Below, piece after piece: positions 2,395 through 33,200 of a stretch of DNA of 64,000 bases. Numbering within the stretch: position 1 is the stretch's first letter; each line of letters starts with the position of its first letter. The stretch spans positions 124,001 to 188,000 of the forward strand of contig JAIVFI010000044.1 in NCBI GenBank assembly GCA_025558095.1, read 5' to 3'. The translations under genes and the position numbers were made by a program. Source of the stretch: Hyaloraphidium curvatum SAG 235-1. Taxonomy: Eukaryota; Fungi; Monoblepharomycota. Below the pieces are notes generated by a model that saw only the letters and a list, made by a program, of their open reading frames with translations, had not been told where the DNA came from and made no database searches.

Positions 2395-2830
2395 TCATTT
2401 GTCGAGAGTGCTACAATCTGATTGTCTTCCTTCTGGCTTTTCCTCATGGGGAGCGAGCAGCCACTCCCGGAAGCCTTCCTTGTCGTCCGGCGGAAGCGGC
2501 GGCATCTCCTTCCCGCAGATCTCCTTGTGGCGCTCGTTCCAGTCCTTCTTCTGGTGCTCCTTGCAGCAGTAACGGACCGATCGGCACCGCGTGCATCCGG
2601 GCCAGGGGGGGCTGTCTGGTGGCGGGAGCCGGAGGCAAGAGAGCTCGGCGCGTCGCGTCGAGTCCCGAAGATAGATGCGATCGACGCCCGCACAGAATGC
2701 GAAAGCCCCCGTCGTATGCCTCTTGTGCCAGGCAGCGCGCGGCGGGTTCCACACTGGCAACCTCGGGGTGGAAAGGATCGACGGGACTAGCCATTTCATG
2801 GAAGCCTTCTTCAGCTTCGCGACTCAAGAA
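2395..2830 (-). pseudogene. MYND zinc-finger gene, probably degenerate or 5'-disrupted
   Basis: GCTRCRSVRYCCKEHQKKDWNERHKEICG is the MYND C-terminal half. The first CxxC pair is incomplete and an in-frame TGA lies just upstream at about 2824-2826. Confidence 0.6.
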
Positions 2831-3137
2831 GGGTATTGCATCGCGTTCGGGGATTGCGACCAGATGTTCCACCGTCGCCGCGAGCATTTCCGGCCGCCCC
2901 ATCTTATCCGCCAGACGCGAATAAGGATGGAAGACGAACGGAACACTAGCGTTGGCGCCGCCTGTGGAGGAGACGGACGCATCGTTGGGTTGTGTGCTAC
3001 GCGACGCCTCGCAAGCGGCAGACGTCACCAGCATTACAACATTCGCTCGAACCTCCCGTATCTGATCGATCATCATTAATTCTTGATTCATCATCTACAG
3101 GTATCTTCTTTTGGTATCCCGGATATCTCATGTCCCT

Positions 3138-5838
3138 TCAGGGGTAGTAGACGACCCCCCTGTCCCACTCCCTCAGCCTCCTCTCCTCGTCGCTCCCGAG
3201 CTTCCCGTCCCCGGCCTCGACGGGCGACCCGGAATGCAGCGTCGTGTTGCTCCCCTCCTCCTCCGACGCCGCGAGCGCGGTGCCGGCCCACAGGGAAGCC
3301 CACTCCCCGCCGCGGATCTCCTCCTCGTCGCCATCGGAGTCCGAGCCGAGCGAGTGCGACGACGCCTGGCGGGGAGCCGCCGGCACGTACGAGAACCGCT
3401 TGGGATCCGCCGCATACGAGTTCCTGTTGGCGCTGGCCCCGGCCTCGACCACGGTCTGCTGCCGCTGCGGGGGAGGCCGAGCCTGCGGCTCCTTGCGCAC
3501 GGCGGGGAGCGAAATCATCCGCTTGACGGCCCCGCCGACGCCCGAGAACCTCGTGGTGGGGTCCCTCGCCGGGGGAGACTCGATGTAGGTCGCGCTCTCG
3601 GGGCGGCCGTAGAGGGAGAGGCGCTTGTAGAGCGAGGTCCGGTTGGCCGCAGGCGGCGCATCGTCCTGCACCACGGCGGAACCGGAAGAAGTGCGGCCAA
3701 AGACGCGACCAAAGCCCGTGGATATCTTGCGCTTCAGCCGACCCTGCAAGGAAGTCAGCTTCGTCCCTATGCAGCAAGGGGCAACCAAAACCCACCATGA
3801 TCCCGACGGCGCCCCTGACCTCGTCCTCCCCGACCTCCACGACCCCGCCCCGCTCCCCCACGAAACCGAGCACCCTCGCCACCCAGGCATCCCTCTCCAC
3901 CCTCTCCATCCCCTCGGTCGTCCACGGCCACAGCGCGATGCGCTCGAGCCCCCACCTCGCGCGCGGATCCTTCTCCATGGCGCCCTCGAGCAGCTCCCTG
4001 CACCCGCGCGACAGGGAGCGGTCGATGTCGGGGGTCTCGGTGCGGATGCGCCGGAAGAGGGCCCACTCTGTCGCGCCGGAGAAGGGCGTGCGGCCGTGGA
4101 GGAGGCAGTAGAGGGCGCAGCCGAGGGCCCACACGTCGGCGGCGGGCGAGGGCGGGTCGGGTTCCGGGGCCGGGGTGGGTTCGGGCTCAGGAAGCGAGGG
4201 AGCGGAGGGGAAGATCTGGAGCTCCGGCCTGGAGGGGGCGTCCGAAGGCGAACGGGTGACGACCACCTTGGGCAGCGCGAGTCGTTGCGGCGCCGGCTCA
4301 GGCACCTCGGGTGCGCCGAACCCGACCATCTCGGGCGCCCAGAAAGCCGGCGTGCCCTCGGTGCCGCGCTCCTGGCCGCCCTCGAAGAGCGAGGTGCCAA
4401 AGTCGGTGATGCGCACGCGGCCGTCAGCATCCAGAAGCAGGTTCGCGGGCTTGATGTCGCGGTGCACGATCCCCCTGGAATGCAGAAAGGCTAGCCCGAG
4501 GACCACGTCTCGCAGCACGGGCCGCACGGAGTTTTCGTCCCAGAAAGGCCGCTGGGGCACCGCTACCTCGCTGTTTGCCGAGTCGGCACCGGCCGGCACG
4601 GGAAACGAAACCGCCGACGCGGAGGGGTCCAGCTGCCACCGCACGGGCCCGCCGGGCATGTACTCGAGCACCAGGTAGGTCTCGCCGGCGTCGCGGTCCT
4701 CGAGCACCTCGAGCAAGCCCACGCAGCGCTCGAAGCCAGAGACCTTTTTCAGCACGGCGATCTCGCGCGCGGCGCCGTCGCGTTCGCGGTTCCCGGCGGC
4801 GGCACCCGACGAGGAAGGAAGCGCGGGGCGCTTCTTCTTGCCGAGCACCTTGACCGCCACCGTCCGATCCAGTGTGTTGTCGTAGGCCAGGTGGACGGTC
4901 CCGTGCACGCCGCGTCCGAGCTCGCGGAGGAGGAGGTACTGGTTCACCTGCGTCGTCCTCTGCTTGGTCTTCTGCACGGTGGGTGTGTGCGGAATGTCGG
5001 GTTCCGCAAGGGCCGACGACGGAGGCGGCGTGGGCAAGGTGTCGGCGGGCGGGATGGCGGGCATGAAGAGCGAGTACGGCCTCGGCTTGGGCTTGCGCTG
5101 ACGTTGTAGCGGGAGCGGAGGACGCTCCTCGGCCGCGGTCGACACCTGCGGCGCCGTCTCCTGCCTCTTCAGCGGCCACCGGAAAGCCTTGAGGGAGAAC
5201 TTGCGTGACGTTTTCCTCGGCTTCTGCGAAAGGTCGGCGACGGGCTCCACCGGCTGGGCACCACCGAACTCAGGTCCACTTTCCACAGACGCCCGTAGGG
5301 ACGACGCCAGGCCCTCCGCATCCAGTGGCGAGAGAACTTCAATGTCTCCGTACTCGACCACCGAGTCCCTGACAGACCCGGTCGCCGTGCTGTGGACAAT
5401 GATCGAAGGCAGGGAGTCGTCCGAGCCAGAAGGCACCTCCGGGATAGCCGTGGGATGCTCCTTCAGCTCCTGCACGGCGGGTATCGGGGCATAGCGCCGC
5501 TGCGGCGGTGCTGCGGTCCTGTCGCGGTCGTCCGCGGGGTACACGTATTCGAAGCCCTCGTGTCCGGCGTGGTCCGCCCACACGGCGCCTTCGGCTGCAA
5601 AGGCCTCCTCGGCGTCGACTTCGAACGAGGCCGACGAGCCGTCGTCGCCCAGGGTAAACACTGCGGGCGGCGTCCGTGCCGGGGCCTGGTCCGCTCCGAC
5701 AGGTGCACCCGCCGGCGGAATCCCGCCACTCGGCCGCTCAGAACCTTCGTTTCGCACGGCTTCCGTGTTTGCCGAGTTGATTTCCAGGTCCGCCAGAGCA
5801 CTCGCCAGCGCGAGGTCCGCCGAAGCGATCCGCAGCAT
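3138..5838 (-). CDS. Ser/Thr protein kinase, CaMKK/Sak1/Ssp1-like
   Basis: VNQYLLLRELGRGVHGTV, VAVK, REIAVLKK, HRDIKPANLLL, DFG, GTPAFWAPE, DVWALGC. Intron 3744-3795 moves into the frame ending ...DRGVVYYP*. Start taken as MLRIAS (5838). Confidence 0.88.
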
Positions 5839-26909: not shown

Positions 26910-27806
26910 CTACACCCTGTTCCTCGCGTCGCGCTCCTTGCTCCCCACCGTCCCGACCGCCCGCTCCATCTCGGCGGCCGTGCCGTCCCACTCCCGCCGC
27001 ACCGCGCTCCGCTTCCCGGACATCCAGTCGGCCCATTCCGCCAGCTGCTCCGGGATCGCCGCGCGGATGGGCGCGATCAGGGCGTCGTGGATGCGCAGCA
27101 GCACGGGGAGCACGAATGCGAGGAGGAAGCCCTGCACGAGAAGCAACGGGAGGGTGTGGATGCCCGAGACCGCTGCACGGACGTTCCCCGTCAGCAACGA
27201 ACACCGTCCGGACGCCACGGAGCGCACCTTCGGCGATCCGATCGGTGCGGTACCAGTCCTCCTGCCTCTCCACGAACCACTTCCCTCCCTTCCTCCGCAG
27301 CTTCATCGTCGTGACCAGCCTCGCGTTGGCCGCGCCGTTGGGAGCAAGGGGGACGAGGAGGTGCCGGAACTTGTGGTGGAAGTGCTGCGTGAGGTCGACG
27401 AACCTTTCCGGCGGCTCGATCAGCATGGGAAGCGGCGGAGGGGGGGAGCGGGCTTACAGGGTGCGGGTACCCTCGTCGAACGCGATCGCGTTGAATTCCA
27501 CACGGAGGACCCAGTTCTGGCGGACCCACATCTCGTCTGCAGTCCGATCCCGCTAGCTGAGCCCAAATGGATGAGTTCTGCCACGCGAGAGGACCCACAG
27601 ATCCCGCAGACGGCGTCGACGCCCTTGACCACGAAAAAGGGATGGACGAAGGTCGCGTCGGGGAGGAACAGCTCCCTGACGGCGTCCCACCGCGATGAGC
27701 TGGCGATCGCCGCCGCGTCGGAACCGCCGTCCGCGGGCGCGGGGGCGTTGCCGGCGGCCAGGATCCGGCGTGCAAAGAGCGGGAAGTCCTTCGGCGGGTC
27801 GTCCAT
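26910..27806 (-). CDS. NTF2/SnoaL-like fold protein with C-terminal hydrophobic helix
   Basis: LFLPDATFVHPFFVVKG, VEFNAIAFDE, FVDLTQHF, RLVTTMKL, KWFVERQEDWY. About three introns. Confidence 0.65.
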
Positions 27807-28128
27807 GTCTTCGGATGCCCGCTTTCGCTTTCGTGGAGCGGAGAGGGCGCAGAGCGTTGTTGACGCGGTCCCCGCCGCGGCAAAACACGCCGCCGCTGAC
27901 CAACCGCGCCGCCCAAAAGCCGGTCCGGACGCCTTCCGGGCTTCAATCCCGGGAGCATATTGCTCCGGAAGTTCTGTTCCCGTCGGGAACCCCGGTCTCG
28001 CTGCTCCGCAGCGGCAGGCGGGCGCTCGCATTCTTCCGCGCCGCCGGACGATCCCGCACGCGCATCGCGGCGCCACCCCCCCCTTTTGCCCCTCTTTCGC
28101 CTCCCGACTGCTCCAATAGTTCAACAAC

Positions 28129-29919
28129 ATGTTCACGGGCATCGTGGAGCACGTCGGCGAGGTCCTCGCCCTGGCCGAGTCCAACGGAAACAAAATCGTC
28201 ACGGTCGGCAACGCCGGGCCCGTGCTGGCCGACACCAAGGTCGGGGACCAGCTGAGCGTCAACGGTTGGCCTTTTCTGCGCGGACTTCGGGGGGGCGAGG
28301 CTGAACGGGGTCGACTCTAGGCGTCAGGCTCACGGTGCAGTCGATTGACGAGGCGAGGACGTCGTTCACGGTCAATGTCACGCCCGAGAGCGCGAGGAGG
28401 TCCAACCTCGGTAGGTCGTCGCGTGCTCGTGCTTTCATCGGCGCTCATCTGCCCTTTTGCGGTCAAGGCGAGCTCGAGGTCGTGACCCCGACCAGCGGCA
28501 TCGTCGGCAAGGTCAACCTGGAGCGCCCTCTCCACAAGGACTCGCGCTTCGGCGGGCACTTCGTCCAGGGCCACATCGACACGACCTCAACGATCGTTTC
28601 CATCGCCCCGGACCCGCCGGGGAGCTCCAAGATCTACACCTTCGAGATCCCCGCCGGCGGGCAGCCCGACCCCTTCGCCTACATCGTCCCCAAGGGCAAC
28701 ATCACCCTCGACGGCGCTTCGCTGACGGTCGTGGCGGTCGACGCCGCCAAGCGCACCTTCTCGATCCTCCTCACGCCCTACACGGCCGCGCACGTGACCC
28801 TCGGCGTCAAGCCCGTGGGCGCCAAGATCAACGTCGAGGTCGACGTGGTGGGAAAGTACGTCGAGAAGGTCGTCGGCAAGCTGCTCCAGTCCGGCGCGGA
28901 GCAGGCGTCGAGCTCCGCCGCGGCCGCCGTGGGCCCCGTGCTGACGGCGGACAAGGTGTCGGAGAAGGTGCAGGAGGTCATTGCGAGCTTCGCCACCAAC
29001 GAAGGGGATTCCCTCGGGAGCGACGTTGCCGTGCGGAGGGTGCTGGAGAACGTCGTCGAGGGCACAGTCCGGAACGTCCTGGGGGAGAAGGTCGTGGACG
29101 AGAGCCCGCGCTTCACCGGTGCCGAGGCGGCCAAGTCGTACCAGGATTCGCTCAAGAAGGCCCACGAGGTGGACGAGTTTGAGTTTGACGACATGGATGA
29201 GGCCTTGGCAGCTTTCGGTGGGCACGGCGTACTCACTGGTTAGCCGACGGTGACTGATCCCGTTGTTCTTAGCCAAGGGCGACTTCCTCATTGTCGTCGA
29301 CTCGATCGACCGCGAGAACGAAGGCGATCTGATCGCCGCCGCGCAGTTCATGACGCCCCAGAAGATGGCTTTCATGGTCCGGCACACCACGGGCATCATC
29401 TGCGTTCCCCTGCTTGCCGAACGGTGCGCGCAGCTCGGCCTGCCCCTGATGGTCCCGCCGAGCGGAAACAAGGAGTACATGGGGACGGCCTTCACGGTCA
29501 CGGTCGATCTGAAAAAGGGCACCACCACCGGCGTGTCGGCCAACGATCGGACGCTCACGGTCAAGGCGCTTGCGGACGAGGCCATCAGGGGAGAGGACTT
29601 TGTGATGCCTGGACACATTTTCCCCCTCATGTACCGCAAGGGCGGTGTTTTGAAGCGGACTGGACATACGGAAGCCGGTGTCGGTGAGTTTTCCACCGCG
29701 CGGACCCATCTTCTATTCTGAACGCTCCTCGCAGATCTCTGTAAGCTCACCAACCTCTACCCCGCCGGCGTCCTCTCGGAGATCGTCCTGGACAACGGGG
29801 AAATGGCCCGGCGCGACGATCTGAAGAAGCTGGCCAAGGAATGGGGCCTCAAGATGATCAGCATCGAGGACATGGCCAAGTACAGGATCAAGCACGGGTT
29901 CACCGGCGAGGACTGGTGA
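28129..29919 (+). CDS. Fusion of a riboflavin synthase-like domain (Rib5) and 3,4-dihydroxy-2-butanone-4-phosphate synthase (Rib3)
   Basis: MFTGIVE, VNLER, FGGHFVQGHID, KGNITLDGASLTV, INVEVDVVGKYVE, then DRENEGDLI, TAFTVTVD, TTTGVSANDR, PGHIFPL, GGVLKRTGHTEAGVDLC. Introns 28265-28320, 28411-28467, 29218-29272, 29684-29734. Confidence 0.92.
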
Positions 29920-30289
29920 CCGGGGCCACGGGTGGCGCGGCCAGGCGCTGCCGGCAGCATAGACCATCTGTTCCCTTTATGAACATGCTGCCTTGCTGCT
30001 TGAGACGTCTCCCGAAGCTTTGTGCTTGTGGGCGAGAGTACAGATCGAAGTCAAGAGGTGCTGCCAAACACACGCCGGCTGCCAATTCTCTCGCTACCCA
30101 GACGGCCTCGTCGGCCCGGGAGAATCCCGCGCCCGGTCGTCGGAGTTTTTCGCTCGACCCCGATCGAAAGCTGCGGCTGCCCTTTGCGGGCCGCCCGCCC
30201 CGCGCCGCGCAGGGCCGGGGTCAACAAGCCGCGCGGCGCCCGGAGCGCAACACCCAAACCCGCCATCGCGCCCGGAAAAAGGACCGCTC

Positions 30290-33200
30290 ATGGCATCGTA
30301 CTCTCCTGGAAGTGGTCGCGGAGGGTGGTCTTTCGGCAGCACGTCGCCGGGCCGGGGAACGGCGGGGCAAACAGTGCAGTCCTTGAACGCTGCGTCGGCC
30401 GGCGCCTCACCCTCGTACGGCTGGCCGCGCCCGCACGGCTTTGAGGTTTTCGCCGCTTCGGACGCTCTTTCTTCGCCAATCGGGGCGGCCGGATACCAGC
30501 CTGACCGGAACTCGGAAGGCGCGTCCGGGTCGCGGGGCGGCTCCCCTACCATTGGCATCGAGACCGGAGGGGGTCAACGTGGGGGTGCCGAGTACTCCCA
30601 CAACTCTCCTATGTCTCCCGGGCCCGGTTCGCCTCAAACTCATGTCGCGCTCGGGGTGGCGACGCTGCTGCGCGACGAACCGGATGTTGCTCGGAACCGG
30701 GAGAAGATCGCCTTCCTTTCCCTTCCGTGCAAGCAAAACGGCAAGGCTCCGGACAGCAACACTTCGGGAGGCCTCATGTCGAAGCTGCTGAAGAAGTCCA
30801 AGGATGTGAGTTCTGTCCGTTCGTTCTTTTTCGGTTCCGCTGACAAGCTTGCGCTCAGTCCGGTCAGTTCAAGGCTTCCGGGGACGTGGATTTCAAATCC
30901 ATGCTCTTGCCTTCTATCTTGGAGGCGGCCGCCGCCCCCGTCTACCCGTCGGACGACCGACAGTCCCGCCCTGCCTCTCCGGCCCGCAAGTCCTCGCCGG
31001 TCAGGGCGCCGTCTCGCTCCCCTTCCCCCTTCTCCATGAGCCGACAAAGAGGCAAATCGCGCGATTTCATGGAGGATGGCTCGGAAGACGAAGACGACTT
31101 CGGACTTCCGCCGCTACCTGGAAGGGCGAGCCGGGTGAGGAACCCGTCGACGGCCGCCATCACCTCCCCTTCGCGACGAGTGTCGTACGGCGTGGCCTCC
31201 CCCACTTCCCCTTCTCGGGGTCCCGCCATTCCCGACGAGTCGCAGTGGTTGGCTCTGAACCAGCTCCGGATCCATGCCGGCACGCCGGAGCGGAGCCCGC
31301 GCGGCGTGGAGCGGATCCTGCAGTACTTTGCCCAGCTGGAGTACCTGGAGAAAAAGTTTCCCTTCGAGAGTGGGCACTCGAAGATTCACGGCGGATTCCG
31401 TTGGTTTGAGGCCTTCGCGGACCAGAAGAGTGAGTATTCTCGACGGGCCTTGCGACTGCCCGTGCTAAAGCTGACCTCCGTCGCCGCAGTGTTTTCTTCG
31501 AACGCGCTCATCACGGATTGTATCCAGTACGAGAAAGGCGCGACCCTGTACAACCTGGCTGCTCTCTACTCGCAGTTGGGGTGCAGCTCCAGGTTGTGGA
31601 CTCCCGAGGGCTTGAAGGAGGCCGGCAACTACTTCCAAAAGGCAGCCGGAGTGCTCACCTATGTTCGGAACTCCCTCCAACCGCGCTTCCGAATCAAGCT
31701 CGAGAAGAGCTCGGACCTAAGCGAGCCCAGTCTGACCGCGGCGATTCAGCTCTGTTTGGCTCAGGCTTGCGAGTGCTTCTACGAGCGTGCCAACAAAGGT
31801 GGGCATTCTTGTACTTGCTCGCGACCTTTTCTCACACCAATCCTTTCAGATCAAACCAGCAAGAGCCTTTGCAAGGTCGCAGCGCAGACTGCAGACCTGT
31901 ACGAGCAAGCTCTGGATACCGCCCGCTCGATGCAGTCCAAGACCTGGGCGCGTTTCCCGGCGGAGTGGTTCGTGGTCTTGAGGTGCAAGCGGCTCCTCTT
32001 CCAGGCCATATCGCTCCTTCACACGGAGAACTCGCTCCCGGACCCCGTCAACACCGCCGTCGGAGAACGTGTCGCCCGGCTGCGGCTCTCGGTCGAAGCA
32101 GCGGAGCAGGCCGCCAAGGAGGCCAAGGCTCTCAAGTCGCCGTGGTCTGCCGGCCTCAAGATCCTGGTGCAGGAGTACCTCGAGCTCATGCTTTCGAGCT
32201 TCATGCTCGCGGAATCGGCCAACATGCAGAACTACCACCAGACGGAGCCGGATCGCCGGCTGCTCGCGCCTCCCCCGCGGCCCAAGGCGTCGCTCGTGGA
32301 GGCCTTCGACTTCAAGAGGGACATGCTTGGGGATGACACCCGCTTCATCGACTTGCTGGAGGGCGTGAAGGCGCCGCAGGTTTGGGGCGACTTCAACGGG
32401 TTCGCACAGTCGGCCAAGGAGACGGCTGCGTGGGGGGTGTTGGAGCTGCGGAAGGCGATGGATCTCGTCGAGAGCCGCCTCGGGAAGCTGGACATCAGGC
32501 TGGCCGGCACCGGGCACTACGAATCGGCTCCTATCCTGAGCAACTCGGCCTTGCTTGCGGCGGCCAATGCCGCTCAAGCAGTGCGGCAGGAGACGGACCA
32601 GGTCCTGGCAAAGCTTGTGGAGGCGCAAGCGGAAGAGTCCATGCTCGCCAGCACCGACGTTGTCGCCAAGCTCGAGGAGTTGCAGAAGTGGACTTCGAAG
32701 AACGTGGATGAGGTGAGAGAACGCCGAAGATTGGATGACCAAGCTGACTCGTCTTCGACAGAGCGTCTATATCCTGGACCACATCGATACCTCCAGCTTC
32801 CCGCAGGATCCTTCCGTGTTTACCCACGTCGGCAACTTGCGCAGCGCGGTCTCGCGCATTTCGTCGGAGCTCGGGGCCCGTGCCGAGGCGATCGCGGCAC
32901 TCAGGAACGAGTTTGCGTCCGTGGACCTCGACGTGCTGGAGTGGAACGAGGAGAAGCTCCAATCTGTCATTCCCATGCTGCAAAAGTCGAAGGACCTCAT
33001 CAAGCAGCACGTCAAGAGCTTCGACAGGGAAACCTGCATGCAGCGCGCCGAGGAGATCCGCCAGCAGTGCGAGGTCAAGATCCAGGAGCTCGTGTCTGTC
33101 GAATCCGACATTGGTGAGGAGTTCTTGCTAATCAGCCAAAAGCAAACTTACCCTTTTCGCCACGCCAGATACGGTCGGCCCCACCACCGATCTCCACGTC

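Follow-up and report, generated by a model that had tools for sequence, protein, structure and literature searches.

A transcribed riboflavin synthase-DHBP synthase fusion gene with an altered lumazine-binding barrel in the fungus Hyaloraphidium curvatum

Does a single gene of the fungus Hyaloraphidium curvatum SAG 235-1 encode two enzymes of riboflavin synthesis, and if so, what does the joined protein do? The question is raised by a forward-strand locus at 28129-29919 of a 64,000-nucleotide stretch (contig JAIVFI010000044.1, positions 124,001 to 188,000; hereafter the window, in which all coordinates are given unless another contig is named). An earlier reading, made from the letters alone (the sequence-only reading), had described this locus as a fusion of RIB5, for riboflavin synthase, with RIB3, for 3,4-dihydroxy-2-butanone 4-phosphate (DHBP) synthase, joining the last and a first step of the pathway. 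Here, we find that the fusion is real and transcribed, and that it has been mis-split in the public annotation. The product is probably one 523-aa chain in which the only DHBP synthase of the organism, itself canonical, carries an altered riboflavin-synthase-type module as an appendage.

The gene comprises five exons that run from an ATG at 28129 to a TGA at 29917-29919, and their summed length of 1572 nt corresponds to 523 codons and a stop. Exon 1 (28129-28264) contributes the start codon, MFTG and the beginning of the N-terminal barrel, which is completed by exon 2 (28321-28410). Exon 3 (28468-29217) is the junction exon: a single stop-free frame leads from the second lumazine-binding barrel through the riboflavin synthase tail and a linker into the first residues of DHBP synthase. 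The DHBP synthase core follows in exon 4 (29273-29683), and its C-terminus in exon 5 (29735-29919, including the TGA). The intervening introns measure 56 nt (28265-28320, phase 1), 57 nt (28411-28467), 55 nt (29218-29272, phase 1) and 51 nt (29684-29734, phase 1).

Domain content was assessed with Pfam by searching the exons singly, and the public proteins P0004 and P0240 were used where longer sequences were needed. Exon 3 alone matches Lum_binding at aa 33-125 (62.8 bits), exon 4 matches positions 9-141 of the DHBP_synthase profile PF00926 (188 bits) and exon 5 matches positions 143-191 (48 bits). The first positions of that profile are contributed by the exon 3 terminus, ..FEFDDMDEALAAF; the profile begins at residue 3 of P0240, whose sequence starts MDEALAAF, and covers positions 2-191 of 191 in that protein (262.7 bits). 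Taken singly, exon 1 (45 aa) and exon 2 (29 aa) gave no Pfam match, and the N-terminal barrel is confirmed by P0004, which represents the region of exons 1-3 and contains two Lum_binding stretches (111 bits). PF00925 (GTP cyclohydrolase II), the partner of DHBP synthase in RibBA, was found by Pfam in no exon of the gene. The open reading frame (ORF), the exon sums and these matches bear out the coordinates and content proposed by the sequence-only reading. Its further claim, that the junction lies within one exon and does not depend on a splice guess, also holds, given the single open frame of exon 3 and the agreement of the transcript joints described below.

A fused gene is expected to yield a spliced transcript that covers both enzyme halves. 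The locus is present in one public run only (X1, 2018), which is stored as contigs. A single 1874-nt contig of this run spans 27896-29966 with zero differing letters relative to the window. All four GT..AG introns are gone from it, exactly at the predicted splice sites and including both edges of exon 3 (for intron 1, the contig joint is 28263/28320, cut +1). The contig is unbroken from a 5' untranslated region (27896-28128, 233 nt without an ATG) through both enzyme halves to a 3' untranslated stretch (29920-29966), after which sequencing adapter follows. Because the introns have been removed, the X1 run is cDNA-derived.

The public annotation of H. curvatum nevertheless presents this locus as two models. 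P0004, the riboflavin synthase model (210 aa), is flagged as partial and ends ..KLLQS without a stop, and its intron 2 acceptor (..SNLGRSGIVGK) disagrees with the cDNA contig. P0240 (206 aa) is annotated as DHBP synthase, is 100% identical to exon 4, and begins at the internal methionine of ..DDMDEALAAF, encoded by the ATG at 29193. No stop codon interrupts the frame from one model to the other. The same gene was found in three related Logan-assembly genomes (L007, L008 and L009); L007 and L008 share both the junction exon and the downstream BRO1 neighbour with the window, and the L009 contig is short, at only 2.2 kb. Compared among the four taxa (the window and these three relatives), the sequence that separates the public models exhibits a ratio of nonsynonymous to synonymous substitution rates (dN/dS) of 0.04-0.12, with synonymous sites (dS) saturated, and its indels are exclusively in frame; its GC content at third codon positions (GC3) is 0.89, compared with a GC content of 0.57-0.66 in the introns. 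With purifying selection acting strongly on this stretch in all four genomes, the split of the locus into two genes is almost certainly wrong.

The locus could still give rise to two proteins, one riboflavin-synthase-like and the other a DHBP synthase starting at ATG 29193, by means of an internal transcription start or cleavage of the linker. Such an outcome would fit the two public models, one partial and the other with its MDEALAAF start, and a short-read contig that lies across two genes does not prove that both are carried on a single mRNA molecule. We consider this highly improbable, however, given that the frame is unbroken in all four taxa and in the related gene of Gonapodya (see below), with no stop between the models, and that the X1 contig is continuous over the junction. 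In addition, the partial P0004 model truncates a conserved terminal helix of the riboflavin synthase module, and the mere 102 nt from the end of that helix to ATG 29193 are coding by both dN/dS and GC3.

The junction region itself consists of 110 residues between the end of the barrel and the start of DHBP synthase, about 80 of which are riboflavin synthase tail. The C-terminal barrel (28566-28844) is delimited by Pfam and the residue audit, and in an AlphaFold model of exon 3 it is the only confidently predicted part (predicted local distance difference test, pLDDT, 71-90). It is followed by the first C-terminal helix (28845-28892), which aligns to riboflavin synthase tails, probably represents the helix that forms the coiled coil of the trimer in solved riboflavin synthases, and is where P0004 ends. 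A 43-aa insert specific to the Hyaloraphidium clade (28893-29021), with one predicted helix, separates it from the terminal helix (29022-29090) that is found in standalone chytrid enzymes. Alignment A1 pairs ..VLENVVEGTVRNVLGEK with the final helix of those standalone riboflavin synthases, among them the genome's own enzyme on contig C14, which ends ..LLENVVRRVVKEEVEKALKGKL and then a stop. The terminal helix exhibits 91-100% amino-acid identity among the four taxa at saturated dS. AlphaFold renders the tail as four helices followed by the N-terminal helix of DHBP synthase, at low confidence (pLDDT 40-65, the first C-terminal helix included). Thus, what had been taken for a linker of about 90 aa is mostly the normal C-terminal tail of a fungal riboflavin synthase; the linker proper is about 29 aa long (29091-29177, by alignment; dN/dS 0.13-0.36), and the DHBP synthase N-terminal helix (29178-29216), with the internal ATG 29193, follows it.

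Lum_binding loci are found at three places in the genome: the fused gene, contig C14 and contig C17. The C14 locus (about 105263-106241; L001:939-1917, +) is a three-exon, canonical standalone riboflavin synthase with the N-barrel motif ..GDSICCNG|VCLTV.., in which Ser41 and Cys48 are present. The fused module is therefore a paralogue of the genome's riboflavin synthase and not the organism's RIB5, and the Rib5 label of the sequence-only reading does not stand. The third locus (C17, about 2722-3666; L003:976-1920, +) is an ORF of 314 aa that resembles riboflavin synthase but has diverged very far: internally it reads MFSG instead of MFTG, it has lost most of the invariant residues, it matches only the second half of one barrel in Pfam (47 bits), and it ends ..ALKGKL like the canonical enzyme. 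It may be another non-catalytic paralogue. The -KGKL terminus is common to the C14 enzyme, Gonapodya P0006 and the C17 paralogue. For DHBP_synthase, the fused gene is the only locus in 31.9 Mb, so the fused protein must supply the four-carbon precursor for all riboflavin. Lumazine synthase and GTP cyclohydrolase II are encoded by separate genes on C21 and C36.

The N-barrel motif of the fused module reads GDQLSVNG|VRLTV, and an ungapped alignment with the Schizosaccharomyces pombe enzyme 1KZL (E 7e-39) sets the numbering: glutamine at position 41 (CAG, 28249-28251, in exon 1) and arginine at position 48 (AGG, 28326-28328, in exon 2). In a reference set that combines 91 enzymes from fungi with 40 domains from bacterial fusions, position 41 is serine in 100% and position 48, the proposed nucleophile, is cysteine in 99-100%, and both residues are kept in 95/95 bacterial fusions with a readable N-barrel motif. 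Within the Hyaloraphidium clade, Gln41 is present in 4/4 taxa, and position 48 is arginine in the window and serine, serine and cysteine in the others. The Gonapodya fusion retains both Ser41 and Cys48. Sequencing error was rejected as the source of Gln41/Arg48, as the cDNA contig agrees with the window at every letter and Gln41 is also seen in three further genomes. In a published review of the pathway, a nucleophilic cysteine takes part in the mechanism proposed for riboflavin synthase, the active site lies between barrels of adjacent subunits, and there is a C-terminal triple coiled coil (PMC13151069). A literature search returned nothing relevant on mutagenesis of Ser41 or Cys48, and the residue terms are absent from PMC10366380.

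The N-terminal MFTG motif is present, as are all residues of the C-barrel motifs (GGH, QGH.D, KG, DG.SLT and N.E.D..GKY); three other conserved C-barrel columns are altered conservatively (M to L, I to T, V to I). In the DHBP synthase half, 56 of the 59 columns with at least 93% conservation are kept, including the RENEGD, PGH.FPL and GHTEA motifs. Three columns depart from this: Arg is replaced by Met before PGH, Ala is replaced by Thr, and in the third an Asp codon is merely split by intron 4. The codon before PGHIFPL specifies Arg in 96% of DHBP synthases, Met in the window and Gln in three relatives. Judged by its residues and profile coverage, the DHBP synthase half is canonical and full-length. 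Selection differs between the parts: in small samples, the N-barrel has dN/dS values of 0.06-0.37 (at least 0.14 in most pairs), compared with 0.05-0.12 in the C-barrel and 0.02-0.09 in DHBP synthase.

What, then, does the fused module do? DHBP synthase feeds lumazine synthase. Riboflavin synthase, on the other side, consumes two lumazines and gives a pyrimidine back to lumazine synthase (PMC13151069). The two fused enzymes therefore flank lumazine synthase, and their pairing is less arbitrary than the phrase "first and last step" implies. The ancestral fusion, of the type still seen in Gonapodya, was probably bifunctional, to judge from its residues. In the Hyaloraphidium clade, the substrate site of the N-barrel has been altered while the C-barrel site, MFTG and the predicted oligomerising helices were retained, and the module would no longer be the main riboflavin synthase, with its catalysis presumably lost. 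We favour an appendage because the N-barrel has a changed site and catalysis is provided for by the standalone enzyme. The module would then be an oligomerising attachment to DHBP synthase, one that may bind lumazine or riboflavin. As a scaffold, it could position DHBP synthase beside lumazine synthase and riboflavin synthase; alternatively, as a sensor, it could let the end-products of the pathway modulate DHBP output. The more specific proposal, a non-catalytic sensor or scaffold whose C-barrel binds lumazine or riboflavin and which, in a trimer-on-dimer assembly, controls or positions the sole DHBP synthase, is put forward only tentatively.

Several observations count against loss of catalysis. 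The relative L009 retains Cys48, and the N-barrel is still under purifying selection and therefore does something. Residual synthase activity is conceivable even at an altered site. The E. coli S41A variant is reported to be strongly slowed but not dead. The conversion of lumazine to riboflavin also proceeds without any enzyme (PMC13151069). The module could be half of a true bifunctional enzyme that makes riboflavin despite Gln41/Arg48 and links the reactions before and after lumazine synthase, in keeping with the co-localisation or co-regulation suggested by the sequence-only reading. Besides the purifying selection and the uncatalysed reaction, the intact MFTG, whole C-barrel site and both predicted tail helices agree with such an enzyme, as does the presence of Ser41 and Cys48 in the Gonapodya and bacterial fusions, from which a bifunctional ancestor is probable. 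Yet both replaced positions are 99-100% conserved in 131 sequences, position 48 drifts through R, S, S and C among close relatives, and the evolutionary rate of the N-barrel is about 2-4 times that of the C-barrel. With a canonical standalone enzyme that removes the need for the module's activity, we regard bifunctionality in H. curvatum as unlikely, and prefer the altered appendage.

The presence of the fusion in other organisms bears on its origin. H. curvatum is placed in Monoblepharomycota, and besides it, Gonapodya prolifera is the only named fungus with a Lum_binding and DHBP_synthase fusion; the remaining named fungal matches carry one domain or the other and never both, in line with the earlier statement that fungi normally encode these enzymes separately. 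Among the 120 best matches to the Gonapodya fusion (P0007), by contrast, 118 combine Lum_binding and DHBP_synthase, mostly in Rothia and Kocuria, and the order riboflavin synthase to DHBP synthase is seen in 118/118 bacterial fusions. The fusion is thus a lineage-specific variant of an architecture common in some bacteria. The architecture is not unique, and Micrococcaceae have many such fusions. The search for this domain architecture has two outcomes: the fusion is common in bacteria and already annotated in Gonapodya, but the literature search found no paper describing a riboflavin synthase-DHBP synthase fusion. RibBA and RibD are the only bifunctional enzymes named in a 2026 review, and the words "fusion" and "fused" are absent from it.

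The Gonapodya gene (strain JEL478, M427DRAFT_51415; P0007, 490 aa; UniRef name "3,4-dihydroxy-2-butanone...") is the closest counterpart, from the same phylum. It encodes two Lum_binding domains and then DHBP_synthase, its junction lies in one exon, and introns 3 and 4 of the H. curvatum gene match its introns in position and phase. Gonapodya also has a standalone riboflavin synthase paralogue besides the fusion. It differs in keeping Ser41 and Cys48, in a linker of only about 10 aa, and in missing most of the 43-aa insert. The actinobacterial RibE-RibB fusions (Rothia, Kocuria and Curtobacterium; about 434 aa) and the triple fusions that include GTP cyclohydrolase II (about 620 aa) join both enzymes in the same order in one chain. 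The proteins of this group, however, keep Ser41 and Cys48, lack the fungal terminal helix, have a low-complexity linker and no introns, and fall into separate tree clades for both domains.

These differences are relevant to whether the fungal fusion was inherited from bacteria. Both fusion modules match the Gonapodya standalone and chytrid enzymes best (223-231 bits, compared with at most 147-171 bits for bacterial fusions). In the C-barrel tree, fused and standalone monoblepharid sequences form one starred clade (97/98) within chytrids, and the bacterial fusions form a separate clade (100/99). In the DHBP synthase tree, the bacterial fusion domains again form their own clade (99/92); this tree is otherwise nearly a polytomy and does not place the monoblepharid domain. 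A single clade of all five monoblepharid fusions is not rejected by the approximately unbiased (AU) test (p 0.53), which is consistent with a single ancestral monoblepharid fusion; within the monoblepharid clade, the riboflavin synthase trees do not separate the order of fused and standalone copies. Gonapodya has the same fusion together with a standalone enzyme, and the most likely course would therefore be duplication of a fungal riboflavin synthase and fusion of one copy to RIB3 in an ancestor of Monoblepharomycota.

A ready-made bacterial RibE-RibB fusion gene could instead have been acquired by horizontal transfer and gained its introns later. The identical domain order in all 118 bacterial fusions agrees with such a transfer, as do the weak structure of the DHBP synthase tree and the 64% identity of some Acidimicrobiales DHBP synthases. 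Trees in which the fusion domains of monoblepharids and bacteria are kept together are not rejected by AU tests (p 0.099 and 0.32); the trees contain no standalone bacterial enzymes, so these tests amount to a question of rooting. We find transfer improbable all the same, because a gene received from bacteria would have to account for modules that score higher against Gonapodya standalone and chytrid enzymes than against bacterial fusions, for a C-barrel clade nested inside chytrids, for DHBP synthase domains of bacterial fusions that stay in a clade of their own, and for a fungal-type terminal helix that the bacterial junctions lack. Considering the BLAST ranking, the trees, this helix, and the Gonapodya junction exon with its shared introns, the fungal fusion very probably originated independently of the bacterial ones, as a case of convergence.

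Related proteins offer parallels for both the architecture and the altered module. In RibBA and plant RIBA, DHBP synthase is likewise fused to another enzyme of the riboflavin pathway, although the partner is GTP cyclohydrolase II, which H. curvatum encodes separately, and DHBP synthase is N-terminal there rather than C-terminal. In Arabidopsis, duplication was followed by the loss of one activity in two of three RIBA isoforms (PMC3509567), a parallel to the degenerate module described here. Canonical trimeric riboflavin synthases (EC 2.5.1.9; S. pombe 1KZL, E. coli 1I8D, yeast Rib5) share the MFTG start, two barrels and, by prediction, the C-terminal helix with the module, but it differs from them by Gln41/Arg48, the 43-aa insert and the attached DHBP synthase. 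Lumazine protein and yellow fluorescent protein are free-standing antenna proteins that bind their ligand in the N-terminal barrel, which is the altered barrel in the H. curvatum module. Both proteins, from luminous bacteria, belong to the riboflavin synthase superfamily and bind lumazine or flavin non-catalytically, according to PMC8272222, and to that extent set a precedent for a binding-only module.

Some additional features were noted around the locus and among the matches. A divergent ORF at 27420-27806 (-), with no Pfam match, has its start about 90 nt away from where the fusion cDNA contig begins at its 5' end, and this proximity suggests a short bidirectional promoter between the two. 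Directly downstream of the fusion gene in the window lies the BRO1-domain gene (30886-33114, +; 191 bits), which serves as a synteny marker. Another unusual fungal riboflavin synthase architecture is found in Rickenella mellea P0022 (320 aa), annotated with SH3 domains and Lum_binding. P0122, P0124, P0148, P0164 and P0211 (about 570-680 aa) combine riboflavin synthase and DHBP synthase with GTP cyclohydrolase II as triple fusions; P0164 is filed in EukProt and looks bacterial, and the riboflavin synthase part of P0122 is the most similar to Gonapodya (54%).

The immediate consequence of these results is a correction to the H. curvatum annotation, in which one gene has been split into a stop-less fragment and a DHBP synthase with a truncated start. 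The practical impact is modest, as the two enzymes are familiar ones and the architecture was already in databases, unremarked. For the family, the fused genes form a natural series in which Gonapodya keeps both residues, L009 keeps Cys48 only and the window has neither, and this series allows the loss or change of function in a fused duplicate enzyme domain to be studied. Were the sensor proposal true, the module would be a protein-level counterpart of the flavin mononucleotide (FMN) riboswitch that controls bacterial ribB, and an enzyme domain would have been captured as a regulator of its own pathway. The riboflavin synthase-DHBP synthase fusion probably has two origins, one in Micrococcaceae and the other in monoblepharid fungi, and selection would therefore have repeatedly joined the enzymes that flank lumazine synthase, which bears on substrate channelling and complex formation in the very slow riboflavin pathway.

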